From: Ophelia neglecta
Taxonomy: Eukaryota
Direction: 5' to 3'
DNA: 64,000 nt
Assembly: GCA_965285935.1 (NCBI GenBank)
Contig: OZ260664.1
Location: forward strand, 81,902,001 to 81,966,000
The notes beneath the pieces were generated by a model that was not told the DNA's origin, made no database searches, and saw nothing but the letters and a program-made list of their open reading frames with translations. The translations under genes were made by a program, and so were the position numbers. Positions 4,301 through 41,089 of this stretch are shown here, one piece after another. Each line of letters begins with the position of its first letter. Position 1 is the stretch's first letter.

Positions 4301-5607
4301 GATAAAATGTCCCAGTCACAGAATCTTAGTAACTGGGTGATTCAGAGCAGAAAAATGAACCAATTACCCACTCACTAGTAGATGTGGATCTATTTTACTG
4401 ACCACCTGGTGTCTTTAATGGTTAAGAACCATCCTTGGAAACATAGATTTAGTAAAAGCAGTGAAAAATAGATTGAATTGTAGAATGAATCTTATTATTT
4501 TCTTGGAAGCTTTTCTTGTTGGCCTAAAATATGTGTACTATATTTGAATTACTGTAAAACCCTTAAACTTAGCTGCCCTTAATATATGCTGTTTTGGCAC
4601 AAAAATGATTTCACTGTCTTTTTCATTTTGCATTTTAGAGGTATCTACAATAGGTACTCACTGGGCCTCTTAATTTTTGCATGGCTTTTAAAATTTCAGG
4701 GTTTTGACCCTACTTGTGAAATTAGCAGTTTAACCGTTTGACAGTATCACCAGTTGATTAACTGTAGAAAACTTGAAAAAAAACTGAACTAATTGTTAAA
4801 AACTTAATAATGGATTGTATGTAATATATAGATTATGTATGATGTGTTTTGTTACAGTATCAGTCCATTTGGGGTGACGCCAAGATCTGCCAGATCTAAC
4901 CACGATGTAAAAAGTATAGAAGACGAGGAGATCGAGGAGGACCTGTCTGTGGCGTCTGATCTGCTTCATAGTGATAACAGTGGGGTGAGTAGCAAATTAG
5001 AGAGCTGGGGGAGGGGGGGGGGGGGATCTGTATGTGTCTTCTGATCTGTTACATAGTGATAACAGTGGGGTGAGTAGCAAATTAGAGAGCTGGGGGGGAG
5101 GGGGTAGGGAGATGGGAGGGGAGAAGATGTGCCTTGATAATATGGCCTGTCTGCTTTGTACAGATAGCAGTGAGGTTATCAGGAAAGTAAACAGCTGAAG
5201 GGGGGGGGGGGGGGGGGGAGCAGAAGGAAGGAAAGAAAGGGTTTTTTTAGGCATCTGATCTGCTTCATAGAGATAACAGCAGGGCAAGTAGGAAAATTGG
5301 CAAAATAAGGGAAAGAAAAAGGCTAGTGCCTGTTCAGTGTGGTGAAGGCAGTAACTTGGTCAAAGGCAGTTACTGCTATATGCAGTGCGATGTTAAATTT
5401 GGGTTAATTTTGTGTATGTGTACTACACACTCAAAACTAATTCAAAGTTAAGGTCTTACAGGATGTGTCAATTAGTATTAGTATATTTTAGCCTAATATG
5501 ATTAATAAATATTGTTTCAGGTGGATGACCTTACCACTGACAGGACAGTATCTCCAGAAGCCCAGAGTACGGCCTTTGACTACGTAGAAGATGTGCTTCA
5601 ACCCTAG
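1228..5607 (+). CDS. CEP43: CEP43 / FGFR1OP (centrosomal protein 43), 3' part; 5' exons lie upstream of the window
   Basis: Five exons (1228-1328, 2566-2646, 3461-3503, 4858-4984, 5521-5607) splice at GT-AG with consistent phases 1,1,2,0. They give ...SSLAGLPSLG-FGGPKAGSDMEKDIKQIDKNLADLGV-DVPEDDYDDDFDSS-...EEIEEDLSV...-VDDLTTDRTVS...FDYVEDVLQP*. This is colinear with the recalled human FGFR1OP C-terminus (SSLAGAPSL, KDLKLISDKIGSLGL, EDDDYVDDFNS, EEIEEDLSV, LDDLTQDLTVS, DYLEDVA). Confidence 0.88.
2566..2646 (+). CDS. CEP43: CEP43 internal exon (FGGPK...KDIKQIDKNLADLGV)
   Basis: tttatttcag acceptor, G|gtaagc donor, phase 1-1. Confidence 0.82.
3461..3503 (+). CDS. CEP43: CEP43 short acidic exon (DVPEDDYDDDFDSS)
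   Basis: tttttatcag acceptor, AA|gtaggt donor; matches recalled EDDDYVDDFNS. Confidence 0.8.
4552..4744. mobile_element. Degenerate TA-flanked MITE (CTGTAAA... termini)
   Basis: ta|ctgtaaaac ... gtttgacag|ta; same terminal signature as 17076-17311 but decayed. Confidence 0.45.
4858..4984 (+). CDS. CEP43: CEP43 penultimate coding exon (ISPFG...EEIEEDLSVASDLLHSDNSG)
   Basis: ttttgttacag acceptor, GGG|gtgagt donor; EEIEEDLSV motif. Confidence 0.87.
4955..5300 (+). repeat. Four tandem, variably decayed copies of the CEP43 exon end plus 5' splice site, separated by G-runs
   Basis: tctgatctgcttcatagtgataacagtggg|gtgagtagcaaattagagagctgggg at 4955; near-identical copy at 5040; degenerate copies near 5147 and at 5254. 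Confidence 0.85.
5521..5607 (+). CDS. CEP43: CEP43 terminal coding exon (VDDLTTDRTVS...DYVEDVLQP*)
   Basis: tgtttcag acceptor, TAG stop at 5605-5607; DDLT-D-TVS and DYxEDV motifs. Confidence 0.88.
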   Translation: MDDLTTDRTVSPEAQSTAFDYVEDVLQP

Positions 5608-6125
5608 CAACGGCCAGGACATCAACTATATCAATCATTCTTACTGTTTATGAAATATTCTAATGCTGCATAAGGACCTGCATTGCACATGAGTTTCCTG
5701 GGCAAAAACGCATAAGGTATATTAAGTTTGTTGTATAGTGTACAGAAAGAAATATATTCTATATAATAATGATCTCCTAGAATATCTAGGTTGTTAAGCT
5801 CCGCCCAGATATGTTTAACGGGACCGAAAATGTAAAAGTAGTGTGATAAAGCATTTTGGATGTGATGAATTTTCACTTGATCGGTGCAAAGTGCCTCATT
5901 GTTTGTTATTTATAAATTGTCCTAGGTTCATCATTTAATATGTTTCATATTGACCTGAAGTGTGGCAGTCTAAACACAAGTTTTAAAATGTGTAAATTAT
6001 AGATACATAGCACTGTACCTAATAATAATTACAAACAATTATAATATGACCGTTCCATTTCGATACCTGGCTTTACTTTCAGATCAGCTCAATAAGTGTA
6101 AAGTGTGTGTCATTAATGATACCTG

Positions 6126-6352
6126 GTAGTGTCAGCAATAAGTACACATTAGTGTCAATAATAAGTACCCAGTAGTGTCAATAATAAGTACCCAGTAGTG
6201 TCAATAATAAGTACCCAGTAGTGTCAATAATAAGTACCCAGTAGTGTCAATAATAAGTACCCAGTAGTGTCAATAATAAGTACCCAGTAGTGTCAATAAT
6301 AAGTACCCAGTAGTGTCAATAATAAGTACCCAGTAGTGTCAATAATAAGTAC
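6126..6352. repeat. 23-bp minisatellite (GTAGTGTCAATAATAAGTACCCA), about 10 copies, in the probable CEP43 3' UTR
   Basis: Direct head-to-tail repetition with no spacers. Confidence 0.95.
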
Positions 6353-7779
6353 CTGTAAGTAGCCTTATCCCTGGATTATTTTTTCATTATTGATGACACA
6401 TATTAATTTTTCGAATGTTGACATCTATTTTCACAAATTTCAGTCACTATGTCTTTTATGTACTGTACGAGGCAGCTTGAAATGATATGTTTATTAATAA
6501 AGTAGTTGATTCATACTAGTATTAAAATGTAATATAATCATATCAGTTCAGTCCAATATTTCATTGAAGTGATTTCTGACTTGTAAAAGTCACATATACA
6601 TGTACATATACATAAAAAGTAAAAACGTAAAAGTACATAAAACACATACAAAACACACAGGCATATACAACACTATCCACATACGCTACACCGTACACAG
6701 AAAAAAATACATACACAAATGTGCATAGATCAAACAGGTTCCCCAGGGCCCGTAATATCATCTAATATTTTATGAAACGACATGTAGATACATTATTTTT
6801 GTTGATGACTCAAGTGAATACATATTTATTGTAGACATACCTGAAACAGTTTAATACTGGTTTGTTTTTATGTTAATGTACACTGCACTCAAAAAGTTAG
6901 TGATGTCCATAGCACTCAATGGGTTAACGTCCAATGTACTGTTCATCTTGTATTAATATTTTTGTCATGCATACATGTATATCCATCATTGGAAATGGCT
7001 GTTCATTGTAAGTTGTTGAAGGATGGTCATTTGTTTTTTCCTTGTCTCCTATTTGTACTAAACAGATAGTTTTTTCTGTATTGAACACATTGATGTTTTT
7101 ATTATTTTGGACAACTGTTTAAGTCTATTTGTCATTTGCCTGATTATTTGTGAGAATAAAATACACATAGTATCTACATCTCTGGTTATTTGTACAATAT
7201 TTTGTACATTTGGTTCTATCACTTGAATAAATGCACAGAAACAAAGTCAAATAAACCATAGAGTTCTGTTATTTTTGTGATGCATTTCATCAGCTTCCCT
7301 TATTCCTATTCTAAATTAATACTGAAGATCTGTAGGCAATTTTCTGGTCATTTTATTCCAGTTGGTCTTATTGCAATAGTATTTTGATAACTCTGCAAAA
7401 TGTGCTAATATTTGTTTCAGCCCCCCCCCCCCCCCCCCCTCCTCCCTCGCCACCAACCCTAGGTGGAAAATCTAAGTATATTTAGTTGCCAAAGAAATGA
7501 CAAAAAAGTACTAATTTCATTTTGCCTTTCTCCTTACATGAAGCAATTTCCAGTGTTTTGAGCAAGCAAAAACTTTGGTTGAGCGGGGGCGGAGGGGCAA
7601 TCTCCAATTGCCAGAAGTGTTCTTTTTTTGGAAAAGCTGATGATAAAAGTTTATAATTTAAATGTATTTTCTGCCAAATGGACTGACATGTTATGGCAAT
7701 GTGCTAACTTTGGAAATTGCTCAATAGTTAGCTTTTGTCGGCAGTGATAAGCCATACCTTAAGTAGCTACTTGTTTGTA

Positions 7780-8402: not shown

Positions 8403-9647
8403 TTGTGAGGGAGTAGGCCACAATCTACCATCTGTTTTCTTCCCCTGTACTGTTAAAGCATGGAATGTCCTTCCCACTGCCCTGACCCTGGCAAAGACCC
8501 TTAATACCTTACGTGCCAAATTGTCGGCAGGCCAAGCCTATAATTCAAGTTAGTTATTGTAGCAAAGAATGAATATGTACAGAACAAACTATCGATCAGG
8601 TACAGACATTAAAGTATACAAATATGATAGTACAAAATTCATGTTTAACACTAACCTACTATAACCTAGGGTCAACAAGGATTGAACCCCTAGAGGGGTA
8701 TGTGCTATCTTATTGAATGGAATTTAATTGAGTTTATTGATAGCTATCAGGTGATTAAAGCCAAACCACAGGATCTCAATTTTAAGTTGAGCTTGACTTT
8801 CCCATGGAAAGGAACATGAATTTTGGTCTAGAGAGCGCCTTGAGCACCTTTTCATATGCCCCCTTTAACTTTTGTCAATTTTTTGGAAACTAAGTCAAGA
8901 AAGGCTACAGTGGGATGGAAACAAATGTTTGCCAACTTATCTAGTTGGTCTTACTAAATATAATATGGACATGCAAACAAGCTATTAATGTACGTGATAT
9001 GCCAGTTGAGCCTATATTGATTCTTTCCAAACGATAGTTTTGAGGAAATTTAAGTGCCTGTGACCACTGGCACTAGGCAACTTCAATGATATGTTACCCG
9101 GTACTTGAAGAGTGATGCCATCCGTTGCCTATGCCTGTGAGCCCTTTGCTGTCTAGGCAAGTAGTCAAATTATTCCTGAAACAGAAACAGAAATACATGT
9201 ATACTTCTCACATGAGTTTATCACAATACTTATGCAGAAATAAAGTCATTTTGGTTTGTACTTTTTTACATTCACCATTTTGGCGAAAATAACCCCATGT
9301 TTCCATGGCAACTCAGTCGCCTGAAGAAGGGTTAATTGATATTCAATGAATATCAGTTCATGTCGCTTTACTTCTAATGGGACCTTATAAAAGTATTTTA
9401 TATGAAACTGGACAAGGCATGGTGACATTTTGTTGAATTGAATTCACTTTTATCTTAAGATGGACGAATAAGAATTTTAATCCACTGAGATCTTTGCTAT
9501 ACGCACATGTGCCTGTTGAAAGAAAATTATTATTATATATTAAACTTTTAAATAGCTACACAATAGTAAATGTGAATATGCAGCTTGAACTCATTAATTT
9601 TTCAGGGTAGATATTGACTGGTGGACATGAATTGACTGCCAACTAAC

Positions 9648-9926
9648 ATGGCTGACGCTGCATCCAATGAGAGCTATGAGCTGAGGAGCAGGGTTAAAAG
9701 ACCTGGCAGTCTGAAACCGCGAGAAAGGGATAAACAGAAAGATGAAAAGGGGTTGCAGAATGAAATGTCTCTAGCCGGGGATGAAGATAAGACTGCTTAC
9801 GTGTGGACATTTCTTTCTGTTGTAAATGTGCTCATTGGATTGACTGTTATGATGATTATAGGACATAGATACTCTTCCTATGTACACCTTCTGCATGAGA
9901 ATGATATGTGGTTCTCCTCAATCAAG
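9648..9926 (+). CDS. DPY19L3: DPY19L3 alternative first coding exon 1A (93 aa: N-tail, TM1, LHENDMWFSSIK)
   Basis: Acceptor tttttcag ending 9605; in-frame TGA upstream of the ATG; AAG|gtaact donor in phase 0. Confidence 0.82.
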
Positions 9927-12900
9927 GTAACTCAAAAGATATCATATATCATATAGAGGGGGCGAAAGGAGCAGGGATAAAGCTATAAATTATAATTGAT
10001 GAGTTCAAAACTCATTACTAGAGGAAAGTATGGGCTCTTTACCGATTTCATGGGCTTTCAAGCTGTTCTGAAAAATATCAATTTTCCAAAATTAAATTAA
10101 GAGTAAAATATTGAAAGAACATACATTTTTTTAATCAATTTGAGATAGGGTAAGCACTCAATTATTCAATGGCCCATTCCTCTTTGACTATCTCTTTAGT
10201 TTTTTGCATGTGAGCAAATTACTCTCTCCTTGATGTTTAAGCCATAGGTACTTTCTTGGCTATTACAGGCTAGGAAAGTAAGCTTGCTAGGTTTTGAAAC
10301 TGATAAAAACTATCAAATATTTAGCCTAATCCAACTCCCCATTCTGGTTTGATCTAGAAGTTATTCATGATGCCAATGCAATGTTATCCATGTGATTACA
10401 TGTACTTTACTAATCAAAAGATAATCTCTCACAAATCTTCTCATTTGAAACAAGCTGCCATGCTTTATAAATTCATTGTGAATGTAAGCCATAATGTAAA
10501 ATTTTGTCAGTATTGGCCTATACCTTTACAATGTTTTGCCATCCGACTTTATTCAACATTATGTTTACCCACACCAATTATGTTCAACCTCTCAGAGAAA
10601 GATGTTGGAATAGATTGTGATGTCGACATTTTCAAGTTGTTGGATACCTTAAGTTTACTTTTGGCACTAAATTGTGGCCAATCATTTTTTCAGTCTGGTA
10701 AAAAATCTGCTATATCTGGTAAAGCTAAGATTGAGGCCTAGTCTTTGTTAAAGTTTCTTCAAAGCAGCGTATTACAAAAATAAAAAACTTTAGCCTATTT
10801 CCATTTCTTTATTCTTTGGAATATGGCTCGGTCTGACTTCTCTGATGGAAAAGTATTGTTGAAAAATATTCTAGTATATAAAAACGTATTCCTGGCAGGA
10901 TTCAAACCCAGGAAAAGAGTTTTCAAAGCCTTTGCTCTAAACCAATCAGCCATGGCGGAATGTACATACCGGTGGAAACAGTTGGCTAACTACGCTGTTG
11001 TGTTCACAATACGTAGGCTGCAGTGGCCACTGTGTACTGGAAATGACCATTGGCCATGTTGGCACTTTGATCACCATACTAGTGATCTTCTAAACCAATT
11101 ATCCTCTAAAAAAGTATCACCATATTACTGAATCATCTACTGTCCATCTGTAAAAGTGGTTTCAACACTTGTATGGTCATATCACCACGGTGTATACTTG
11201 TGACAGCGGGCTCAATGCCCTCTTTTAATCGCCACGGTGCCTACTTGTGACAGTGGGCTCAAAGCCCTCTTTATAGTGCTGCCTCACTGGAGTACCTGCC
11301 GTAGACACCAGACAGTGAACCCCATACTTACACTGGGTTGACCAGTCCTGATTCTACCCCGAAATATCTGGCTTGCTATATATAAGAGGTGCATGCACCT
11401 TGGATCCTTGTGTTTACTACTACTTGGGGGAAGTAGTCTTCTGCAAACATTGGACATGCATCCTGAAGTAGGTTGTTTTTTAAAGGGAATAATTGCAGAG
11501 CAATTTTTGGAATTCGATAGGAAATTAGAGCCCCAAATTCTGAATTTGGGGTTGTGAAGTGGCCCCCGCATTGAGATTAGGGCCCTTTTGCTTTGTAAGG
11601 TGGTGGGACAATTTCCGAATTTTTTTTGGGATGTGATATCCCTTGAACCATTCTGGGGATAATTTCATATCTGTATGGTTGTCTTCCATGGACATTTGCA
11701 ATGTGCTGAAAAGATTTTGGCCTGATCCAGAAAAACTATATGGCTGCCAAGGGCAGTCATTTACAATGTTGAAAAATGTCGTCTTGTTAAGGCCTTACGT
11801 TGCGAGATAGGCATATCAAATATCTTGAACACTAATTAATAGTAAATCATAAACAAGGAATCCAGTCATGACCTCCAATTTGACCTTGGGTCTTTTTCTC
11901 TAGGTCTCATTGTGGTTCAGCATATTTCATGGAGGTCTAAATAGCTAACAATGCAAGAAAGACATACTGGATTTATTGAAAACTAGGAAGTCCTATGCAA
12001 GGAATTCAATGCTGATCTTGTATTTGACCTCGGGTCTCATTTTGTAGATCAAATTGAAATTAAGGCTTTCTTTTGATAGTCTGGATCATCAGAGGTGCAA
12101 GATAGACATACAAATGTATTGACCACTAATAGGAACTCATAAAGTGTAGTGAATTAGCTTTTTTCTTTTTTAATATTCTTTAACAGAGAATAAAGAAAAT
12201 GAACACATTGCCCTCATTTTTATTCGTCTTACCTGCATGGTGCCTTATTTGCTATTTGCATTTATGGTCTGTGATCCCCTGTCTGCCCTTTAGATAGTTC
12301 AGTCACATTTGTACCTGGGCTCTTATACAGCTATTTAAATAGATACAAATGGTCTGGATGAACCTTAGGTGTAGGTGTGGTGTGGGAGTGTTATAAGAAG
12401 GGTGTTTAGCCTCTTTTTCTATTCCAGTGTATCTGCAGGTTTTTGTTTGGTAGTAGAAGAGAAGAATTTGCTGCTGCTGTTTCAATTGACCAGCATCAGG
12501 CCTGTAATCAACATGTACCAAGTTAAAAGAAGTGCACTTAGTTATCTTTGTGTGCCTGAAATATATCAGTTGAATTTCACCACGTTCACGGTCGATATTT
12601 TGGCAGAATTTACAATTGTTTTGGGGGAAATATGTTGTATACAGGTCTCAAGTTATACTTTGAAACATCATGATCAAACTCCTTTATTTCCACGGCGGTC
12701 TCTGTTAGTCTACCAGTTCATATTTCTTATTGATATTGCATAGAACTCCGCTATCTATCAGACAACAGTGCCATCCATGAAGCTGTGCAGCAGCCATTTT
12801 TCTCAACATCAGGATGAGAGAATGGTAGGGACACTTTCAGCTGGGCATGGGGATTCACCAATTGAACATTGGAACTTATTTTACTGGCATTTCTTCTTAC

Positions 12901-15900: not shown

Positions 15901-18900
15901 ACCGGCTTGTAACATGGTTCGTAAAAGAAACCAGCATTCTCCAGGCAAATCTAAGCAGCCTAAATCCAAGGAGATTACTGGCAATAGTCACATTGATGTT
16001 ATTGATGAGGTGAACGTTTATCTTCCGTGGCGGGAGATAGGACGATGTACATGGATACTGTTAGGGATTTTAGTGTGTATCAGTGTGGCCTACGGCCATG
16101 GCTGGTATATGAACAAACTACATGAAAATCGCTTGTGGTTTTCTAACATTAAGGTGAGGTTAGTTGTGACCTGGCTTTTCATTTCCCTGTGACTATATGA
16201 TTATACAGACTGATCATTGGTATTTGCCCTGTTCCCAGTGGCTCTATTGACATAGAGAGCAGCCCCTTGAAGTTTGCTCCTGTTAGTAGATTTCATCCAA
16301 ATAATTTTGTGCACTACTGGCCAGAAATAGGCATTGTAGTTTGATAAGTATCCTTTCGTGATCAAAGCATGAAATAAATAAGTGTATTGTTTCTTAAATG
16401 TTTTAATCCTTTATATAATTGTTCAAATGTCCAGGCCCTGCAGTATTGTGCCAATGGGACAGGCTAATCCCATATAGGAAGAGAAAATATAGGATGCATG
16501 CTTCAAGATGGCTTTGCATTATTATGACATTCTCATATTGACTAGGCCCCCTTTATACAATGATGCAAGCAATTAGGGCCTCCAATTTTTTTTCAGCTAT
16601 TAGATAGGGCATAATTTCCTTTGATTCCTCACATTGAGACTAACTTTTTAAGGTAGAATTCTGGTACTTTTTACTATGCAAATCTCAGCACTGTTGCTGG
16701 TCATAGTCTGAACATCAGACTACTCCTTCCACCACCACCCCCCCCCCCCCCCCGTCCCCCCACCCCCAGCCCGCCCCTTCCCTGTCCTGCACTCCATCAG
16801 ATAAAGAAAGGGCAGCAGTTTGAGGTTTCCATTCAGAGTAACCCCAGTTTCCAACCCTAGGTATGTAGCACCCTACCCTAATTGGATGCACCCTCCCCCC
16901 CCCCCCATATAATAATTATGGTGTTGGTAGTATGTTTCAATTTGATGCATATACACGAATGTGAATTTATTATATTGAATGTATAGGTCATGACCTATCT
17001 GTTAAAAAAATACTTAAATATTTTCATGGTTTTTCTTAAAAGTAGAGAAAGCCATTGGCCTTGATGACCTGCATACTGTAAACCAGGAAATTTTCGCGAG
17101 CAGGAAATTTTCGCGAGTTTCGCGAATAGCAGACACCCGCGAAAATTACCTGCTCGCGAAAATTCCGTGTCTAAATACTACTAGTTAAATCAGTTGCAAC
17201 GCATGACATACTTCACTTTCAATTTCAGAAGCGCGAAGTTTTCCTGGCGCGAAAATATCCTGTGGGGATTCCTGCGAAATTTTCCTGTCGCGAAATTTTC
17301 CTGGTTTACAGTATTAAATTAACTCAAGCTTGTGATTGTTGTTTGATTCTGACAATTATCAACCACATAACATGTACTCTCTGGCAAACCGTCTAATATA
17401 ACTACACTGTCTGTCTAACACAGTTAAGATGTTTAAAGGTTTGTTTTATTGATTTCAGGAGGTGGAGCGTGAGATTTCTTTTCGTACAGAATCAGGCTTA
17501 TATTACTCCTATTACAAGCAGATGGTAAACGCTCTGTCTATATCTGAAGGTAAGTTTATATTGTCACAACTAACATACCAGTCTGAAATCATGTGGCAAA
17601 TTTATACAGGTAGAAATAAATTATTACTGTAATTCCTCTAATTATTTAATAATTAATACACACTAGTTTCTCTAATTGTTTTAATTCATACACTCTTGTT
17701 TCCCTAATTTTTTTAAACATCTTATTATTGGTATAACTATGTGGAATCCTATTGTGGTGCCTGAAAATTGGCATTCTAAATGATAATGTTGGCTCTGCCT
17801 CTAATTATTCATTTTACAGGAATTATGATAATTTAGGTGTCTTAAATGTCGGGGGAATTACATTATTACATACATATCAAAAAGATAAAGGAAAGACTTA
17901 AAAAATATATAAATGTATACTTTAATAACACCTAGTGTTGTTAATGTAAATAATAGACTACATGATAACTATTAGTCAAGAATCTTGACAGCTAGACTTT
18001 TCCTCATTTACTAAAAGCAGTAGATTATTGATCTTTTTGTATCTGTGGTATTTTTAAGAGCCTGTTTCTACCTTATCTTTATGCACAATTGGGAATATTT
18101 GAAAATGTCCTGGTTTATATTAAAGTAACATGATTTGGTGCTAGATTTTGATGAGAGACAACATGTGTTTGATGTTTAGTAAATTTGGTTTACACATACC
18201 CCGGTAGGTCTCAATCAGCTGATGTATGACAACCTCACTGAGTACAGATCTACGATCAATGTTCTGGCTCGTATGAATGTCTACCAGGAGGTATTTCTGG
18301 CCATCATCTACAGAACTTTTCCTATTTTACAGGTAAAAATAATAATAATTCATGCTGTATTTTGTATAGCCTTATTGTTTAGAATTTCAAACATTCTGTG
18401 CAATGAGAAGTACCTGAACTTTTGATGTATTCTTAAACAAGTTGACGGGAGTTATAGATTGCCTGAATGAGCTGCTTCTCTGAATACATCATCTTTTCCA
18501 TCACTTAAGTCTGCACTTGACCATATTGTAATACAAGAAGGCTTTTTTCATGCTCCATATCTGGCATATTTTGTCTTTTTGACAGATTCTTATGGCCACA
18601 TGCCACACTGTTTTGATCACTGTATTATATGTTAAGTGTAAGACCACCTCCATAGTCAGGGCATAAAATTTGCATGTCCCTTGGATGGTCACAATTCACA
18701 GGTTTCACTTTTATTCAAAATATCCCCAAAATTGGACACAGTGCAAAATTAGTGTTAAGAATATAAACGCCCTCATCATTCCCTAACACCCGGAACTGTG
18801 TGTTTGATATATGATAATTTTGGGAACTACATTTTTGACCCCTCCTCCCCTACCCAACCCACCTAGCCATCCCTAAGGTTCATAATATATTTGGGAAGTG

Positions 18901-24900: not shown

Positions 24901-27900
24901 GAGACTGGCATTTGTTGGACTGCTTGGATTACTCTTTAACTCAATCAGAAAACTTGGATAAGATATCCCCAACAGTACACAAACCTACCTTAGTTCAACA
25001 GTTAATTAATGGGAGATCAACAACAATACACAAAACTACCTTAGATAAACCAATTATCCAGCCTGGTTAATTGTCCCACAGTCTAGGGGGGTAGGGGTAG
25101 TAGAAGGTTGATAGTTATTTCCATATGTCAGGGAGGACCATAAAAGCAATACAAGTCTTTGCAGTACACATTTACCTACACAATGACACCTGACTTGTGG
25201 GTCTATAGGAAATATTGATAAAGAAGTTGAATTCAAAATCTACACCTGTACCATGCCAGTTTTGTATGACGGGAACAAACCAGTCTAGGGGGGTAGGGGT
25301 AGTAGAAGGTTAATAGTTATTTCCATGTGTTAGGGAGGACCATAAAAGCAATACAAGTCTTTGCAGTACACATTTACATACACGATGATACCTGACTTGT
25401 GGGTTTAGAGGAAATATTGGTAAAGAAGTTGAATTCAAAATATACACCTGTAATCGGTTTTAGATCAATTTACGTGCAATGATAGGCCATCACTGTGTCG
25501 ACTTTCTTTTCAAGATTTTGGGTTATTCCCGATAATTTAAAATAAAAAGGGTAAAATGAATTGTTGTATATGTTTAAAACAAGCGCAAAAAATGGGTCTA
25601 TAATTGGTTTTCTAAGCATCAGTCTGCTAAAATTGGTAATTCGATTTAATCCTCCATTGGTGAAAACTGAAGACTGCTGTTCTCGCGCGAGTTCGCATGT
25701 TAACGAACATTGCAATTTCAGTTAACATGGCGGTACATAGGTATCGCCCCGGAGTCGCGAGTCCTTAGTTTAGTGGTTCCAGTCTTACAGAACTTTCTTA
25801 TTTTCATTAGTTGAGGAATCTTGGCCCATGTTTGTTCATGTGTGTGTGTACATGTACATGTATAATGTGCATGCGATCTTATGTGCATTTGTATATGTTT
25901 TTAGATATGTATATAAGTGCACATGTATAATGAATGAAAGGGATGGTGTATGGGTATTGTCAAAATGGGTTTTCATTTGAGCAAGAAGCATATAAAGTGC
26001 CTTTGATTAGTTGATTAGTTATGCTATGCCACAATCTGGAAACTGGCTTGGAAACAGTGTGTAATATGATCTGTGGAGGATATAACTTGTAATGCCTATA
26101 TTGATATATTTAAGCTGGAGAATCAGAAATGCTATTTAGAAGTGTCCATGGTAATATATCAGAGTAATATTTACGAATTACGGTACAAACTGTGTAACTG
26201 TGATACTGTGTACTGAGGGGAGTGTTAACATTTGTGCAGGTCTGTTGATATCCTCCTTGCTTGCTAAGTCCATGGTGCCATTTCTGTCCAGGATTTCTGT
26301 ATAATGTATGGCAGAACAATTTTAGAGAGCCGGATATTTCCGCTCATTTTGCTATGATGTATTTCCGACGGTCTCTATTCTTGCTGGGGTTCCGTCCTGG
26401 CGCCCACTCCCTGAGCGTGGGGGCTGCAAGCGTAGTCTCGATATCTAGATAGTAGGGGTACTTTTTGGGCTTTGATCTCGTGCCAGAGAATTCCCGAATA
26501 AGGGGTACATTTTCGTTTTTTTCTCCTGAGAAATTGAAAAAAAGGGTCTTTTTATGTGCCTCCCAAGAAATAGAAATAAAGGGTTATTTTTACAAGCATG
26601 TGCAGAGAAAAGGGATGGAAAGTTACTATAAAAGGGGGTTAGGTGCTACCTGGAGCCTGAGAATAGGGGTATGATATTTCATCAAGCCTAAGTTAGGGAG
26701 GTAAAATAATTGGAAAACCCCTCGATAGCCTGTGATAAGAAGGTGAAAAATTCAATGCCTTTTCTGAGATAAGGGTCAGTTTTCAAAAGTGGTGAACAAG
26801 CATAGGTACCCCCTTAAATGGTGGAGTGGGGGGGGGGTACCATCAACATACTAATTGATTTTATATCTAGTATTAAAAAAAAAACCATTGATTCAATACT
26901 GTTTTCTTACAGGGTGGACACCACTCGAGTTGAGTATGTTGTCCCGCTGAGAGAAAGCTTTGCCTTGCCGTTTATTTGGGGACAATTGTTCTTCATCACA
27001 GTGTACCTAAAGCATGACTGTGGCAAAAGAAAACAGGCTAGTAAATCATCTAATAATAATTATAGACTTTACTGAAAAACTTGTTTTTTTTTTGAAGTTG
27101 TATGGTGAAATGCTTTTGTCTATTTTGATTAAATGAATAATATGTCTTAACCATCTAGATGCTAGCCATAGTGGGAACTCTGCTGTGTACATTTTGTTTT
27201 GCCATAACTTGGCAATTTAACCAGTTTGTGTTGCTGCTACAAGCCATGGCCCTGTTTGGAGTACAAGTGTTAGAACTGGTTCCTCTACACAAGGTATCAG
27301 CCATTGCTACTACTACTACTAGTGTTAATATGATTTGCACTATCTTTCCTCTCATGGGTACCTGTCTTGTTCTTTGTTCATGTAAGCAGCCGTCCAGTCT
27401 ACCTAAATCAGCACCCAGTATTCCCTTTAATATCTAGACATTGATAGCAATAGTATTTGTTGTAAATACAGCAGGATTCATTGAGTTCTTACATGACTGA
27501 CTAACATCAAAATTCTTGCTTTCGGACAAATATTGTACAAAATACATGTATGACTTAGTGTCTAACATTACAAAATATTTGCTGATTGATACACATTCCT
27601 TCTCTGTTTCAGATAGCGACGTTGTATGCCATTCAGACTGTGACAATGTTCGGTGTGTTCATTTCCCAGTTCATGAACACCATGATATTAACCGGTCTTC
27701 TTCCCAGCTTTCTAATAGGTGCTTGTCTCATAATGATGGCTCAGGTAAGTCTGTTATTACTTGCTCCCCCACCTCCACCCCCACTACTTTCAATTTAAAA
27801 AAAACCATGGAGGTTTTGAAATAAAGTACCAGTGGTTATCATATATTGTGAGAGGTGTTTGATCCCAAGATAGGATATACACTACTAATATATTTCCCAT

Positions 27901-30900
27901 CAATAAGTGACCTTTATGACATTTGTATAAATTCTGCACATTGTCTAAAGAATCAGGCCATTTGCTGCTTTGCTGTTAAAAGAGTTTCATCCAACGCCAC
28001 ATAATATCAAAGCCTCAGAGTAGGTTATTCAGGCTTAGCATTTTTCTTAGGCCTAGCTTGTTCAACTAACCCCATTACTTACCCAGGGATAATCGCCATA
28101 TCACTCGCTAGGGGTACACCTTGGTGCAACAATGACTACCCGGGTAGTTTAGTTTAACATTCCTGGTACATATCTCATGCTAGACTCTCTAAATTCTAAA
28201 AAAAATTGTTAATTAGTCACTTTGAATAACGAAGTACTTAAAATATTTATATATACATATATATGAATTATTAATCATGAAAATTGACTTAATCATTAAA
28301 AGTACAATGAAGAAAAATAATATGATTTGCTCTGTATAATCTTTTTGCAGAAGAAGCAGTTTTTAGCTGGTGAAGGGGTGATGTTAAATGTTGGCAGGAC
28401 ACTGGGTTCTGTTATCCTAGTCTTCGTTCTAATGATCTCATTTAATAAATTATCAAAAGTGAGTCACATTCTTCATCATTATTGAATAAGTAGGCTTTTA
28501 AAAAACCAAAATAGTGCCCAAATGCAGTATTAAATCTTTTCTAATAAACCAGATCAATTCCAAACTTGCTTCGCCCACAGTCATCCCCTTGCTTGGCCCA
28601 CAGTCATCCCCCTGCTTGGCCCACAGTCATCCCCCTGCTTGGCCCACAGTCATCTCCTTGCATGGCCCACAGCTAGCCCTTGCCTGGCCCTTAGCTAGCT
28701 CCTTGCTTGGCAAACAGTCATCCCACTGCTTGGCCCACAGTCATCTCCTTGCATGGCCTACAGCTAGCTCCTTGCCTGGTCAACAGTCAGCTCCTTGACT
28801 GGTCCATAGCCAGCGAGCTTTGTCCACGGTCATCTCCTTGCCTGACCCACAGCTGGCTCTCTTGCCTGGCCCACAGCTAGCTCCTCTCTCTCAAGCACCA
28901 AGTACTACCCACACTACTCCCAGCTCAACACATCTCATTCAACCCCCATCCATGCCGCCCCCTCCACTCCCCTCCCGAGCCATCCTTGTTGGGTTCGTTC
29001 TTTTTTTAAGTGTCCCCCTCCCCACCCCCCAAACACATACTCTCTGGATGACATAAATAAAAACACTACAGTCAGGACCTTCATCTTTGGCCTCTCACTT
29101 CCCATTCCTACTGTCCGCTCTCCACAAACGTGCCCCCCCCCCCCATCCCATCTAACCTCAGTTCATTATTTCCTTAGTATAGAGGCATGGCTGTTTATAA
29201 ACCTTGATGAATTCATTTTCAGATTATATTTCCCGACCAAGCAGATGAGCACATATACAAGTTTGTTCTCTCCAAACTGGGCTTTGAGCAATCTAGGTAT
29301 GAGTCAACTCTACTGAACTCTACTGAAGAAAGGAATTTACTGATACACATTGGATAAAAAGATTACGAAATATGATGTGATCCTCGTGAACAATATTGAC
29401 TGTATAGTTATTAGTTGAAATTATCTCTTTTCAACAAAGTTTTTTTAAGGTATTTTTGTTCCTTATGGTGCAGATAGGTTGTAAATACTATTAAATAGAA
29501 GCTTATTAGCTTGTTTAAAATCTGTATTTCAGTCTTTAGTTTTGATGTATATAATTGTTAAAGCTCTGTACACGTTTTGCAGAGACTTTGATGTCAACCT
29601 GTACCTGTGTAATGGAGCATTCACTATGCTGTCATGGGACACCTTTGAGAGACTGACAGGGAGATTAGCCTTCCCTCTCTATGCTGTGGTTCACAGTGTG
29701 GCACTGATGGCACTAGCTGTGGCACTGTTACAAAAGTGGAGGCAGGTTATTAATAAATTAAAAGATATGACCAGTGGACCATGGTCAGGTGGCACGTTGA
29801 TTAAGATACTATTTGTTCTCACAGGTTTGGGAAGATAGACAAAGGAGAAGATGAGAAGCAGCGAGAGAGAAAACATTGGTACCAGAGCCGCCCAGAGCTG
29901 GCCTATCATATCAGTAAGTACCAGAGCCGCCCAGAGCTGGCCTATCATATCAGTAAGTACCAGAGCCGCCCAGAGCTGGCCTATCATATCAGTAAGTACC
30001 AGAGCCGCCCAGAGCTGACCTATCATATCAGTAAGTACCAGAGCCGCCCAGAGCTGGCTTATTATATCAGTAAGTACCAGAGCTGTCCAGAGCTGGCTTA
30101 CCAAATCAGTATGTACAAGAGCAGGCCAGAGCTGGCCTATCCTATCAGTAAGTACCAGAGCCGCCAAGTGCTTGCCTTTAATGTCAGTAAGTACCAGAGC
30201 CGCCCAGAGCTTGCCTATCATATCAGTAAGTACCAGAGGCGCTCATAACTGGCCTGTCTTATCAGTAAGTACCAGAGCCATCCTGAGCTTGCCTCTCATA
30301 TCAGTAAGTACCAGAGCCACACAGAACTGGCCTATCATATCAGTAAATGCCACAGCCGGCCAGAGCTAGCCTATCATATCAGTAAGTACCAGAGCCGGCC
30401 AGAGCTAGCCTATCATATCAGTAAGTACCAGAACTGCCCAGAACTGGCCTATCATATCAGTAAGTACCAGGGCCACTCAAAGCTGGCCTATCATATCAGT
30501 AAGTGCCAGGGCCGCTCAGAGCTGGCCTATCATATCAGTAATGACCACTGTTGTCCCAGCTAGCATATCATATCAGTGGCATAGCAGTGCTAGTCCTGAA
30601 CTGACTTTCATATCAAAATGAACCAGGGCATTCTAGATCAGGCCCATCATATCAGTAAGTACTCAAGCCACCCGGATCTGATATCTTTTACAAAATATTT
30701 ATATGAAATAATCAGGAGTTCAGATTCTTCAAAACTCTTTCAAATAGACATTCTAGCTTTAAAAACAACAGCCACAAACTGTGCGATTCTGCTGTAAGTC
30801 AATTAAGATTACTATTTCAGTCCAGGCGGTGTTCTTTGGAGTCCTGGCTGTCAGTACATTAAGGATGAAGTATTTGTGGACCCCCTACATGTGTATACTG

Positions 30901-33853
30901 GGCAGTGCTGGACTCTCAGACCACACTGTATGGAGCTGGCTCGCTGGCAAGATTAAAAAACACACGGCAGATTCTGTGGTAGGCTTCATAATTTTGTCTT
31001 GATTTCTTTAATTGTATATTTAGCATATTGCTATGGCATGAGTATACCTTGTTTGTACAATTTATATGAAAATTGGATAGTCGATAATTTGGTTATATTA
31101 ATAATAAGGCAATTTGGTATGCACAATGGTTCCAATGTGTAACCAACCTTAACTACTGACAGAATACACCTTTCCTCAGAGATAAAATACACAATTTTAA
31201 GCCTTTTATCATATACTTATTTGACACTTTACACATATCTTGTGAGCTGAATATAAACCATGTCCTTGTTCCTTTCTCAGGTGTGGATAGGTAGACACCT
31301 ACTGCTGTGTGCTTTGATAGGAGCATTATTATATGTGGTAAGAGACAATACTGGTCTCCCAGTGGAATGTCAAAACACAGGCTGGACATAGTAGATTGAA
31401 GCTTGACCATTTTGTAATCAAAGTTGATGTAGCAATGCCCAATACTAATATCAACATGGAATCCACAGTCAAGCTAGTGATTTATTTATAGTTATGTGCT
31501 CATTTTTTTCATCATCTGCAATTGTATTTCATGTACTGAAGAATAAAGTTTGACATTTGATTTTGAAATGTTATTATAGCAGATTTTGGATTGGTCCCAC
31601 TTTTGTTAGTCACCAGTACCGAGCAATCACCCGCTCACCTGCCAAGTCACCATCTAAATGGATTCATTATTGTCCTGGCTTGAGAGGCCTTCTCTATTAC
31701 AAGGGTGACCAGGGTAGTCATGATATTGACCCTTGTACCAATCCCGTTGCAGGCGTTGCCTCCCACTATGAGTGAGCTGGAGGAGCTGAGGGAGTTCTAT
31801 GATCCAGACACTGTACAACTCATGGAATGGATCAAGTATGTACTCAATACTCCATCTTAAAGTTCTACATCCCCGCTTCTTCAGAATGTTTAATCGTTAA
31901 TTCCTGCCTGCTGTTGCCCTGGCAAATGTCAAACTATCAGTGCTGCAGTAGAATGGGGAGTAACCTAAAACTTATATCACCATCATAGAACTACTAATGT
32001 TATAATATAATACATGTACATTCATGTGGTTAAATAGCATTAACTTTTATGTAAGTTTTGAATGGTAACATTTGTTATTTGTGTCAGATTATACATTGTA
32101 CATGAGGTGAACACTGACTGTTTATATCAATAAATTGTAAAAAAAATATGTAAGGCCTGTTCTGAAGATCCCCATAATTCAACTAATCATAAGGCCTTTT
32201 TTTAAAGATCATCATTCCAGTTAGATTAATTTGACATTGACATTTGATTTGATTAAGTGATATAAGTAGTATCATCCTCTCCTGATGATATAATAGTTGG
32301 AGCTCTCCTTGCACTCAAATTCTAGTAAATAGGTGACCATGTTCAGACAGAAGCAGTCAAATCTGTTCTGAAGTGGGATTTCACACATATATGTCTATTC
32401 TTATACTACTATATGTGTTTCTCAGGTTTGAGACCCCTAAGACGGCCGCGTTCAGTGGCAGTATGCAGCTCCTAGCCGGGGTGAAGCTGTGTACCGGCCG
32501 ACCAATCACCAACCACCCTCACTACGAGGACAAACTTCTCAGGGAAAAAACATTCCAGGTTAAACGAAGAGTTTATTATTTGCAGGCCACTTAAATCTCA
32601 TAACTTTGGGATGTCTGACACCTAGGAATCTTCCCTCTTACCATGTCACAAACTAACTTCATTAGCCTGCTGAACAAATTTCAATCCCTTTATCATCATG
32701 TTCAGGACTATCCCATGGTGAATGATCATGTCCAGGAGCTGTGTTTTATATTAATTGTTAATCTAGGCTACATGTAAACGGACATGTAAAAATGCATAGG
32801 TGATGCAGTTGTATAAAATTTGTTATGCGTGAGGTACCTGCCCTTGTATGCAGGGCCGATAGCGACTTGTTGTAGCTGAATGTTTGTTTTTGTATTGTAG
32901 TTGTACCAGATGTATGCCAGACAGCCCCCGTTTTATGTGTACAGCATGCTCAAGTACCACGGAGCCAGCTACGTGATATTAGAGGACAGTATTTGTATGG
33001 CTCCCTCCAATGACGGCTGTCGACTTCCCGACATTCTTGACAGAGCCAACGGCCATGTACGTCATAACATAACATTTCAACTGGTGAATTTTTGCATTAT
33101 TTTTCCTATAAAACAGATTATAAAAAGTCTGATGTCTGATGCATGGCAATTTGTCAACCACAATTGTGAGTAGTAGTCTATGCCTGCATAGAATACTACT
33201 AGGCCTGATGGACTAGTAGATATGGCAATTTTGAACAGGCCTAATGAGCCCATTTAAAACACTACATGAAAGTTACTTTATGAAACTACATAAGGCCAAT
33301 GTTGTATGAAGAAGGAGCTAAGTAATTTATTTGCTCAGAAAATGACCATGAAAACCGGAACTTAAACATAGCCAGATAAAATTAAATGTGAATATAATGT
33401 TAGTATTCTGTCAGTCATTGCCTGAGTTTGACATTACTACTTAATAATTATGATAATTAGTAATTGCAATCAACAAAAGATGTTTAAGTTGCTCACAAGG
33501 GTGTGAGTGTGTGAGTGTGTTTGTGTGTGTGTGTGTGGGGGGGGGGGGGCAGGGGATACAATATTTATGACAGTTTACAATAAATGTCACAAGTGAACCA
33601 TACTACTTCATTTTCAGTAAAAACTACTTATGTTCTTTGCCCACAGATCCCAGATAAAGCAGAGCCAGAGCCTGGTCTGGTAGATGCCTACAGCCCACGC
33701 TTCTGTGATGAGGTGCGCCATGCCAAGGGGGAGTACGGTAAACTCTTCAAGCAGGTGTTCATCAACAAAACATTCCGTATATACAAACTGAAGCCAACAG
33801 AGCCCAACTCCAAGCCCATCATACACCCAAACAGTCTGCCTCCTGTAGTGTAG
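9648..33853 (+). CDS. DPY19L3: DPY19L3-like protein C-mannosyltransferase (GT-C fold), complete multi-exon gene
   Basis: Exons: 1A 9648-9926 or 1B 15914-16153, then 17459-17549, 18208-18332, 20401-20546, 26913-27036, 27159-27293, 27613-27744, 28351-28458, 29223-29296, 29583-29741, 29825-29913, 30821-30978, 31281-31337, 31753-31835, 32426-32558, 32901-33056, 33647-33853. They splice to one ORF (2217 nt with 1B = 738 aa; 751 aa with 1A). Motifs LHENxxWFSxIKEVEREISFRTExGLYYSYYKQ, DTTRVE, PLRE, TWQFNQF, DEHI, RDFD, RMKYLWT, ELREFYDPDTV, GSMQLLAGVKLCTGR, NHPHYED and LEDSIC match recalled DPY19L3 rather than DPY19L1. Confidence 0.93.
10891..10958 (-). mobile_element. tRNA-derived SINE head relic / pseudo-tRNA
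   Basis: The minus strand has A-box-like TGGCTGATTGG and B-box-like GGTTTGAATCC at tRNA spacing, but the anticodon stem does not pair. Confidence 0.4.
11181..11370 (-). mobile_element. Probable SINE central-domain fragment with an internal 47-bp tandem duplication
   Basis: 47-bp duplication at 11181 and 11228 (seen directly). atagtgctgcctcactgga...gaccagtcct resembles, from recall only, the Nin-type SINE core of invertebrates. Confidence 0.4.
13329..13494. mobile_element. TA-flanked MITE
   Basis: ta|caggggtccctgt ... acagggaccactag|ta imperfect TIRs; internal aaggccacc / gcaggtgg subterminal repeats. Confidence 0.6.
15914..16153 (+). CDS. DPY19L3: DPY19L3 alternative first coding exon 1B (80 aa: N-tail, TM1, LHENRLWFSNIK)
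   Basis: In-frame TAA at 15869-15871 upstream of the ATG; AAG|gtgagg donor in phase 0 joins EVEREISFRTE. Confidence 0.88.
17076..17311. mobile_element. 236-bp TA-flanked MITE (Tc1/mariner-type target), TTTCGCG-rich
   Basis: ta|CTGTAAACCAGGAAATTTTCGCGA ... TCGCGAAATTTTCCTGGTTTACAG|ta; 24-bp TIR with one mismatch. Confidence 0.9.
17459..17549 (+). CDS. DPY19L3: DPY19L3 exon 2 (EVEREISFRTESGLYYSYYKQ; catalytic-loop Glu)
   Basis: tttcag acceptor, G|gtaagt donor. Confidence 0.93.
17627..17863. mobile_element. Degenerate TA-flanked MITE
   Basis: ta|ctgtaattcctc ... gggggaattaca; internal ctctaatt repeats. Confidence 0.45.
18208..18332 (+). CDS. DPY19L3: DPY19L3 exon 3 (YDNLTE...RMNVYQEVFLA)
   Basis: ggtag acceptor in phase 1, CAG|gtaaaa donor. 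Confidence 0.9.
20401..20546 (+). CDS. DPY19L3: DPY19L3 exon 4 (EPVYFYI...SWLLSGTW)
   Basis: cttcttccag acceptor, AA|gtaagt donor; not in the supplied ORF track. Confidence 0.92.
21066..21135 (-). mobile_element. tRNA-derived SINE head relic
   Basis: Minus strand TGGTACAGTGC (A-box-like) and GGTTCAATACC (B-box-like); no full cloverleaf. Confidence 0.3.
21854..21859 (-). terminator. Candidate polyadenylation signal (AATAAA) for the nested UGT
   Basis: TTTATT on the + strand about 190 nt past the UGT stop; a second one lies near 21597. Confidence 0.35.
22047..23615 (-). CDS. UDP-glucuronosyl/UDP-glycosyltransferase (GT1, animal microsomal UGT), intronless, nested in DPY19L3 intron 4
   Basis: 522-aa uninterrupted ORF with a signal peptide, GSH catalytic His, the UGT signature [63 protein letters not shown], a C-terminal TM helix and a KLKQS (KxKxx) ER-retrieval end. 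Confidence 0.97.
   Translation of the reverse strand: [522 protein letters not shown]
24565..25783. mobile_element. About 1.2-kb non-autonomous DNA transposon with ~31-bp imperfect TIRs
   Basis: Left end actggaacaaccaaaccaaaggactcgctact vs reverse-complemented right end actggaaccactaaactaaggactcgcgact; CTTAC is repeated on both flanks; no transposase ORF. Confidence 0.65.
25079..25452. repeat. About 172-bp direct duplication (25079-25250 and 25281-25452)
   Basis: cagtctaggggggtagggg...acacctgta occurs twice with scattered substitutions; period 202. Confidence 0.92.
26913..27036 (+). CDS. DPY19L3: DPY19L3 exon 5 (VDTTRVE...PLRESFALPF), probable GC donor
   Basis: ttttcttacag acceptor; CAG|gctagt donor gives a gap-free alignment to recalled DPY19L3. 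Confidence 0.88.
27159..27293 (+). CDS. DPY19L3: DPY19L3 exon 6 (TWQFNQF)
   Basis: catctag acceptor, AAG|gtatca donor. Confidence 0.88.
27613..27744 (+). CDS. DPY19L3: DPY19L3 exon 7 (QFMNTMIL)
   Basis: tctctgtttcag acceptor, CAG|gtaagt donor. Confidence 0.9.
28351..28458 (+). CDS. DPY19L3: DPY19L3 exon 8 (TM segment, ...FNKLSK)
   Basis: ctttttgcag acceptor, AAA|gtgagt donor, phase 0-0. Confidence 0.85.
28574..28884. repeat. 23-bp minisatellite (CCCACAGTCATCCCCTTGCTTGG-like), about 13 diverged copies, intron 8
   Basis: Units start at 28574, 28597, 28620 and so on. Confidence 0.9.
29223..29296 (+). CDS. DPY19L3: DPY19L3 exon 9 (DEHIYKF)
   Basis: cattttcag acceptor, AG|gtatga donor. Confidence 0.9.
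29583..29741 (+). CDS. DPY19L3: DPY19L3 exon 10 (RDFDVNLYLC...), GC donor
   Basis: ttttgcag acceptor; AG|gcaggt donor is required to keep the frame into exon 11. Confidence 0.88.
29825..29913 (+). CDS. DPY19L3: DPY19L3 exon 11 (FGKIDKGEDEKQRERKHWYQSRPELAYHI), shortest form
   Basis: tttgttctcacag acceptor. The A|gtaagt donor at 29914 joins exon 12 to give RPELAYHIIQAVFFG, which aligns with recalled human KPETAYNLIHTILFG. Confidence 0.88.
29880..30680 (+). repeat. 39-bp minisatellite spanning the exon 11 / intron 11 junction, about 20-21 copies
   Basis: Unit TACCAGAGCCGCCCAGAGCTGGCCTATCATATCA|GTAAG; units 1-3 are identical and divergence increases 3'-ward. Confidence 0.97.
30821..30978 (+). 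CDS. DPY19L3: DPY19L3 exon 12 (STLRMKYLWT)
   Basis: tatttcag acceptor in phase 1, GTG|gtaggc donor. Confidence 0.92.
31281..31337 (+). CDS. DPY19L3: DPY19L3 exon 13 (last TM, VWIGRHLLLCALIGALLYV)
   Basis: cctttctcag acceptor, GTG|gtaaga donor, phase 0-0. Confidence 0.82.
31753..31835 (+). CDS. DPY19L3: DPY19L3 exon 14 (ELEELREFYDPDTVQLMEWI)
   Basis: gttgcag acceptor, AA|gtatgt donor. Confidence 0.92.
32426..32558 (+). CDS. DPY19L3: DPY19L3 exon 15 (GSMQLLAGVKLCTGR...NHPHYED)
   Basis: tttctcag acceptor, CAG|gttaaa donor. Confidence 0.93.
32901..33056 (+). CDS. DPY19L3: DPY19L3 exon 16 (YVILEDSIC...GCRL...ANGH)
   Basis: tattgtag acceptor, CAT|gtacgt donor. Confidence 0.92.
33647..33853 (+). 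CDS. DPY19L3: DPY19L3 terminal exon (PRFC...VFINKTFRIYKL...*)
   Basis: ctttgcccacag acceptor, TAG stop. Confidence 0.92.
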   Translation: MPDKAEPEPGLVDAYSPRFCDEVRHAKGEYGKLFKQVFINKTFRIYKLKPTEPNSKPIIHPNSLPPVV

Positions 33854-40891: not shown

Positions 40892-40953
40892 ATCATACAA
40901 TCAATCATACAATCAATCATACAATCAATCACACAATCAATCACACAATCATT
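40892..40953. repeat. 12-bp tandem repeat (ATCAYACAATCA) running into an assembly gap
   Basis: About 5 copies immediately before the N run. Confidence 0.85.
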
Positions 40954-41089
40954 NNNNNNNNNNNNNNNNNNNNNNNNNNNNNNNNNNNNNNNNNNNNNNN
41001 NNNNNNNNNNNNNNNNNNNNNNNNNNNNNNNNNNNNNNNNNNNNNNNNNNNNNNNNNNNNNNNNNNNNNNNNNNNNNNNNNNNNNNNNN
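40954..41089. other. Assembly gap (136 N)
   Basis: Run of N. Confidence 1.

Follow-up and report, generated by a model that had tools for sequence, protein, structure and literature searches.

A minisatellite seeded on a splice donor of DPY19L3 in Ophelia neglecta, probably with silent pseudo-donors

The gene for the C-mannosyltransferase DPY19L3 of Ophelia neglecta carries, at the start of one of its introns, a 39-bp minisatellite whose unit consists of the end of the preceding exon together with its 5' splice site. The array lies in a 64,000-nt stretch of assembly GCA_965285935.1 (contig OZ260664.1, positions 81,902,001 to 81,966,000 of the forward strand), which we refer to as the window and in which all positions below are counted unless stated otherwise. 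Tandem Repeats Finder (TRF) placed the minisatellite at 29879–30541, with a period of 39, 17.0 copies, 86% matches, 0 indels and a score of 969; with the roughly four decayed units that follow these 17 clean ones, the whole array spans 29879–30697. We consider it probable that this is a near-neutral splice-donor minisatellite (a "mirage", of the type found in intron 7 of human F7) with silent pseudo-donors and perhaps with minor isoforms longer by 13 or 26 amino acids (aa). Studied cases of the same architecture, together with the conservation of protein length, suggest that the first donor is the one used. The array and its surroundings are laid out as follows, a slash within a sequence marking an exon-intron boundary.

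29491 to 29741, + strand: preceding coding exon (about exon 10), ...RDFDVNLYLCNGAF...LLQKW, comprising the tenth transmembrane helix (TM10) and the beginning of the cytosolic loop; found by tblastn with DPY19L3 homologues, its 5' limit approximate, its end at 29741 deduced from phase and from the orthologous donor of a related species (relative L001)
29742 to 29824, + strand: intron 10, 83 nt, GGAG/GCAGGT, from phase analysis and comparison with the relative
29825 to 29913, + strand: exon (about exon 11), 89 nt, with a purine-rich 5' part, ending ...RPELAYHI; the orthologous exon of the relative has 77% protein identity
29879 to 30541, + strand: the 17 clean units of the 39-bp minisatellite, of which units 5–13 and 15–17 are confirmed by contigs of three sequencing runs
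29914 to 29919, + strand: authentic 5' splice site GTAAGT (TCA/GTAAGTAC), the donor that gives family-typical protein spacing
29953 to 30231, + strand: in-frame pseudo-donors 2–9, each step adding 13 aa; candidate sites by sequence
30246 to 30248, + strand: first in-frame stop on read-through, TAA, in unit 10; later donors would give premature-stop transcripts
30542 to 30697, + strand: decayed units 18–21, unit 20 with an intact TCAGTAAGT whose last exon-side base is 30654
30698 to 30820, + strand: unique 3' remainder of intron 11, with a pyrimidine tract and a single acceptor (...tactatttcag)
30821 to 30978, + strand: next exon (about exon 12), (I)QAVFFGVLAVSTLRMKYLWTPYM..., with TM11 and the Arg of RMKY that binds dolichyl phosphate mannose (Dol-P-Man); Pfam Dpy19

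Unit 1 of the array comprises the last 34 nt of exon 11 (29880–29913) followed by GTAAG. Units 1–3 are identical, unit 4 differs by one base and unit 5 by two, and each unit after unit 5 carries 1–6 base differences when the units are cut in register; the youngest copies lie at the exon side of the array. The 9-mer TCAGTAAGT, a donor of the TCA/GTAAGT type, occurs 15 times, always in phase 1, with its last exon base at 29913, 29952, 29991, 30030, 30069, 30147, 30186, 30225, 30264, 30303, 30381, 30420, 30459, 30498 and 30654, and unit 6 has GTATGT in place of GTAAGT. Donors 1–5 are identical across a context of at least 34 nt. Reading through a unit adds 13 aa (SKYQSRPELAYHI and variants), and the frame stays open through unit 9; the intron-side GT of pseudo-donors 2–9 stands at 29953, 29992, 30031, 30070, 30109 (the GTATGT), 30148, 30187 and 30226. 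Altogether about 820 of the 907 nt of intron 11 belong to the array, which reiterates only donors, the acceptor at 30820 lying in unique sequence. In every point of fact that it raised, our analysis agrees with the original prediction, made from the sequence of the window, which had described about 20 tandem 39-bp units built from the last 34 nt of exon 11 plus GTAAG, a TCA/GTAAGT donor repeated in phase 1, first donors identical in sequence, and a gain of 13 aa per unit in a frame open as far as the TAA of unit 10.

The position of the exon 11 end was fixed by homology to the RPELAYH of homologues, where it is single-copy. The motif RP(E/D)LAYH occurs once per homologue, always 22 residues before RMKY, and RPELAYH(I/L) is the conserved start of the helix that ends in RMKY, just as had been proposed for the RPELAYHI of exon 11. 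In the +1 frame the exon at 29825–29913 reads FGKIDKGEDEKQRERKHWYQSRPELAYHI. Donor 1 is complementary to U1 over seven contiguous bases, from +1 to +7, and its exon part is without a match. To compare protein spacing, we counted the distance from the DFD motif to RMKY exon by exon in the window. Among 61 full-length homologues this distance is 87–126, with a median of 96, the loop thus exceeding the median by up to 30 aa. Splicing from donor 1 would give 96, the exact median, and donor 2 would give 109, donor 3 122, and donors 4–9 135–200, a loop longer than in any of the 61 homologues. Judging from the sequence, intron 10 is probably a GC-AG intron: the relative has GGAG/GTTAGT at the position of this donor, and the phase of a nearby CAG/GT at 29745/6 does not fit exon 11.

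The gene that hosts the array is otherwise intact. Searches by tblastn with full-length homologues indicated about 16 coding exons on the + strand between 9.6 and 33.8 kb, of which at least 13 match, including exons 12–16 and exons upstream of the array. Every named best match of the nearest full-length homologues is a DPY19L3, and the window is 50–60% identical to DPY19L3 of bivalves and brachiopods and farther from that of amphioxus, echinoderms and vertebrates (Branchiostoma DPY19L3 ranks 63rd by similarity). Going by these best matches, the gene is the DPY19L3 orthologue and not L1, L2 or L4, which accords with its original assignment. The same similarities mark the animal as lophotrochozoan-like, nearest to molluscs and brachiopods and not an amphioxus, and no species close to it is represented in the databases. 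Exon 12 matches Pfam PF10034 (Dpy19) with an E value of 4.9e-11 (42 bits against a cut-off of 27.2; profile positions 432–477 of 653), and exon 11 alone, being too short, has no Pfam match. Exon 12 contains three allelic single-nucleotide polymorphisms, all of them at third codon positions, as expected for a working gene. We note that two open reading frames (ORFs), at 9636–10046 and 15917–16153, each give a match to the N-terminal exon (tail, TM1, HEN..WF) of DPY19L3 homologues, and from their sequence it is possible that they are alternative first coding exons.

Exon 12 alone gave no match in a search of the PDB, and a full-length homologue was used in its place for comparison with known structures. 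Aligned by way of an Elysia homologue, the arginine of the exon 12 motif LRMKY corresponds to Arg471 of CeDPY19, at the luminal end of TM11. In CeDPY19 this residue binds the phosphate of Dol-P-Man, the substitutions R471A and R471Q abolish activity, and the dolichol groove is formed by TM6 and TM11 (PMC10154233). From the published topology, in which the N-terminus is cytosolic and there are 13 helices, the charged stretch preceding RPELAYH would be the cytosolic loop IL5. Since the duplicated copies stand in tandem, any additional units would make IL5 longer, with the final RPELAYHI-IQAVFFG helix start unaffected. The view that the insert would fall in a tolerant cytosolic loop thus appears sound, the loop varying in length among homologues and being cytosolic by homology to the CeDPY19 structure. 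The DPY19L3 model of Lingula anatina (P0111, 1082 aa) contains an internal repeat of about 350 aa of the protein middle, with a second RPELAYH...RMKY block; this is probably an assembly or annotation duplication, and it is not a ladder of 13-aa steps.

A search for sequencing runs of this animal listed three DNA runs (X1, X2 and X3) of one sample and no RNA run, and to establish that the array is present in the animal, we made use of Logan contigs from these DNA runs. Positions 30029–30383 (units 5–13; 355 nt) and 30434–30673 (units 15–20; 240 nt) are covered by contigs of separate runs with 0 differences, and over the identical units contigs break and depth rises two- to three-fold, as expected for a collapsed repeat. 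The prediction had named an assembly artefact as something to check; the array is present in the reads, its diverged units being reproduced by the short-read contigs. That the array, or its length, is absent from the animal we therefore regard as extremely improbable, even though three perfectly identical units cannot be counted from short-read contigs, so that the number of units 1–3 (29879–29995) rests on the assembly, and even though run X3 has no contig over 30012–30183 (units 4–8). Runs X1 and X2 have such contigs, and contigs cannot size the array; the gap in X3 is a weak hint of an allelic difference. We note that the flanks at 29622–29805 and 31003–31240 are very heterozygous, with about one variant per 12–25 nt in the runs, and that no variant is listed within the array of about 800 nt (29826–30620), an absence that may stem from mapping or filtering in repeats, or from homogenisation. 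A separate 23/24-bp minisatellite (CTTGCTTGGCCCACAG...) lies in an upstream intron at 28565–28885, and at 28861–28881 all three DNA runs have 23 extra letters, a one-unit length difference relative to the assembly.

Comparison with the relative indicated that the array arose in the lineage of this animal. An ENA contig of this species, reached via a protein match, contains the orthologous exon (FGKIDKGDDEKQKNRCHWFQNRPELAYNI) with a donor at the same place, followed by an intron of about 219 nt that has no array, as opposed to 907 nt here, which makes the array an expansion specific to this lineage. Searched against all 762 Mb of the assembly, the unit gave matches at the DPY19L3 locus alone, so it is not a dispersed element, and an origin from a dispersed repeat or transposon is ruled out. 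Neighbouring units have variants in common (units 13/14, 16/17, 11/12, 5/6 and 8/9/11), which shows repeated internal duplications, the usual turnover of a minisatellite.

We suggest that the array would have started from a tandem duplication across the junction of exon 11 and intron 11, which ordinary minisatellite turnover (replication slippage or unequal exchange) would then have amplified and reshuffled. The copies after the first would be intronic pseudo-sites, with the spliceosome taking the most upstream donor (29913/29914) and so producing the canonical protein. Donor 2 or 3 would be used in a small fraction of transcripts at most, adding 13 or 26 aa to IL5, and the array itself would be near-neutral, length-variable DNA. 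Several considerations weigh against this account. The use of donor 1 is judged by analogy and from protein length, and the precedents are mammalian and from amphioxus, lineages other than that of this animal. Duplicated strong donors favour the downstream site in vitro (PMC3413131), and short introns such as intron 10, with its 83 nt, suggest intron definition, which would favour downstream donors. Finally, pure neutrality does not predict that the donor core in units 2–17 is better kept than the rest of the unit, an observation to which we return below.

The original prediction saw in the array a loop-length dial combined with a sink for nonsense-mediated decay (NMD). On such a reading several of donors 1–9 would be appreciably used, IL5 would be lengthened in 13-aa steps, donors from the tenth onward would lead to NMD, and array length would tune the mix. 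The unit length is a multiple of three, donors 1–5 share an identical context of at least 34 nt, the frame is open through unit 9, and the loop is cytosolic and of variable length among homologues, all of which would suit such a generator of graded isoforms, as would the use of the first two pseudo-sites of IFI6 and CBS (PMC1557585) and the preference for downstream sites in vitro (PMC3413131). However, given the substitution load, units 2–9 would be stop-free by chance with P = 0.30, so the open frame is no evidence of selection. Compared with the consensus, 7 of the 20 changes in units 2–9 are synonymous (35%), and so are 11 of the 32 in units 10–17, past the stop (34%); by this comparison there is no signal of coding selection on units 2–9, and the copies appear unconstrained as protein. 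Moreover, it is donor 1 that gives the family median, donors 4–9 exceeding all 61 homologues, and in none of the homologues did we find such repeats. Used as a query, the 140-aa read-through ORF matched a single protein, an ORF from the genome of a related species, and among the proteins of 77–245 aa that this search covered, no transcript-derived one with repeated units was present. The 120 full-length DPY19L3 proteins compared are all at most about 60% identical to the window, so this species is not among their sources. In the studied natural cases at most the first two pseudo-sites are used (PMC1557585). We consider graded isoform production unlikely, and the dial and NMD sink unsupported. 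The specific form in which several of the nine in-frame donors are really used under intron definition, with a ladder of IL5 lengths in 13-aa steps, a mix set by the allele, and NMD of transcripts from donors past the stop, seems to us more doubtful still.

A second alternative supposes that the silent copies are kept as a cluster of U1 small nuclear ribonucleoprotein (snRNP) sites that raise the efficiency of donor 1 or protect the intron, copy number tuning the output of mRNA; it can coexist with the near-neutral minisatellite that we favour. What speaks for it is the donor core TCAGTAAGT, in which 2 of 144 sites are changed in units 2–17, compared with 49 of 480 elsewhere (Fisher p = 2e-4), making it the least-changed of the 39 cyclic 9-nt windows. 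The same contrast is seen among A/T sites alone (p = 0.024), among G/C sites alone (p = 0.04) and when only unique events are counted (2 vs 33, p about 0.005). Units past the stop keep the core too, which argues for a non-coding reason and against selection for coding isoforms. In addition, the exon side of donor 1 has no match to U1, and competing sites upstream reportedly accelerate proximal splicing (Hicks et al. 2010, cited in PMC3413131). Nevertheless, the signal is post hoc and comes from a single array, whose units share descent and so give non-independent counts; adding the decayed tail makes the signal weaker (8.2% vs 14%, rank 6 of 39), and the related species lacks the array altogether. 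We also examined other arrays of this genome. The older GOPC array, about 35 bp x 25 and seeded on CAG/GTAGGG (L014 6116–6960, G000:C7, at about 78.767 Mb), shows the opposite, its donor core being changed more than the rest (19.6% vs 13.6%, p = 0.04), and two younger arrays, of 89 and 102 bp, have too few changes to give the test power; conservation of the donor core as a general rule is thus rejected on these three. We accordingly regard a U1-recruiting role as improbable, to about the same degree as graded isoforms, and the better-kept core as a local, post hoc and unexplained signal.

The arrays used in this comparison, which we fetched from elsewhere in the genome, follow the same plan, the end of an exon and its donor having been amplified where the intron begins: 89 bp x 17.7 (AAG/GTAAGT; aligned with wrap-around on account of its indels), 102 bp x 5.2, and the array of about 35 bp x 25. 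Their genes and units differ and their origins are independent. Unlike these, the DPY19L3 array has a unit that is in frame, and its first nine donors are in frame. Within the window, a neighbouring + strand gene contains an 85-bp duplication at 4939–5104 (2.0 copies, 90% match), the copies carrying ...GATAACAGTGGG/GTGAGTAGC, with a third, decayed copy at about 5250–5300 that has GCAAGT. Further minisatellites lie at 6107–6353 (23 bp x 10.8), 25079–25452 (202 bp x 1.9) and 40892–40951 (12 bp x 5), and a run of N at 40954–41089. TRF gave 20 rows over the 64 kb. Tandem repeats are thus abundant in this genome, a circumstance that alone raises the chance of junction-spanning arrays. The structure is in this sense ordinary, a minisatellite seeded on a splice donor of a kind that recurs in this genome, and its value is modest.

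The closest parallel to the DPY19L3 array is the 37-bp variable number tandem repeat (VNTR) in intron 7 of human F7, the first unit of which spans the exon-intron boundary (Borensztajn et al. 2006, PMC1557585). Of its 5–9 identical donors only the most upstream is used physiologically; the pseudo-sites are functional, each becoming active only once all upstream sites have been destroyed, and even when strengthened up to 91% of the consensus they do not compete (PMC1557585). In both genes identical pseudo-donors come after an authentic donor, all with a single acceptor in common, and the F7 VNTR is polymorphic in length. The F7 unit, however, includes 4 nt of exon and is 37 nt long, not a multiple of three, whereas the DPY19L3 unit includes 34 nt of exon and is 39 nt long; moreover, F7 has a weaker donor (UGG/gugggu) in 5–9 copies and belongs to a mammal, and donor use is experimental there and inferred here. 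The idea, already raised for this array, that some positional rule imposes the first donor has been shown by experiment for F7 (PMC1557585), and for DPY19L3 it would hold by analogy.

Other human genes have such minisatellites too. In intron 2 of IFI6 (6-16) and in the intron 13 VNTR of CBS, the donor is reiterated 15–25 times after the authentic one, and the authentic donor and the next two are used constitutively (PMC1557585). These two genes provide a precedent for a small isoform ladder, with use ending after the second pseudo-site and not graded. The IFI6 unit is 12 nt long (4 aa). For LMNB2 (100-bp unit) and PDGF intron 4 (81-bp unit), the same source gives the authentic donor as the only one used (PMC1557585); like the DPY19L3 array, these have their first unit on the exon-intron boundary and comprise 10–18 copies, but their units are longer and they are mammalian. 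A later review bears out this account of donor use in the four genes. An invertebrate parallel is offered by the "mirages" of amphioxus (Adh3, globins, TnC and PGBD5), in which regular splicing is undisturbed as assessed by reverse transcription PCR (PMC3087553, PMC3902484). Mirages, too, are minisatellite-like tandem duplications of exon-intron boundaries; they are unstable in length and evolve in concert within clusters. They differ from the DPY19L3 array in having a cephalochordate host and in occurring at 3' boundaries as well. Zhuo et al. in 2007 reportedly described introns that arose from tandem arrays providing both splice sites; this type of intron birth is ruled out here, where the reiteration concerns donors alone and the acceptor stands in unique sequence.

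In constructs with two strong duplicated 5' splice sites, splicing in vitro takes place nearly exclusively at the intron-proximal (downstream) site (Hodson et al. 2012, PMC3413131). As in DPY19L3, identical donors complementary to U1 compete there for one acceptor, and the outcome is the opposite of that in the natural minisatellite cases, so that use of the first donor in DPY19L3 is likely but not certain and the outcome not foregone. With 15 exact strong donors 39 nt apart, nine of the array's donors being in frame, it constitutes a natural test of 5' splice-site choice outside mammals. Because the first nine donors are in frame, products of alternative donors would escape NMD and be easy to see. 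At stake, in an animal with short introns, is whether the most upstream donor wins, as in F7, or the intron-proximal donor, as in vitro. The architecture itself, the novelty of which the original prediction had implied, belongs to a class already known from at least five human genes and from amphioxus, of which the DPY19L3 array is a further case.

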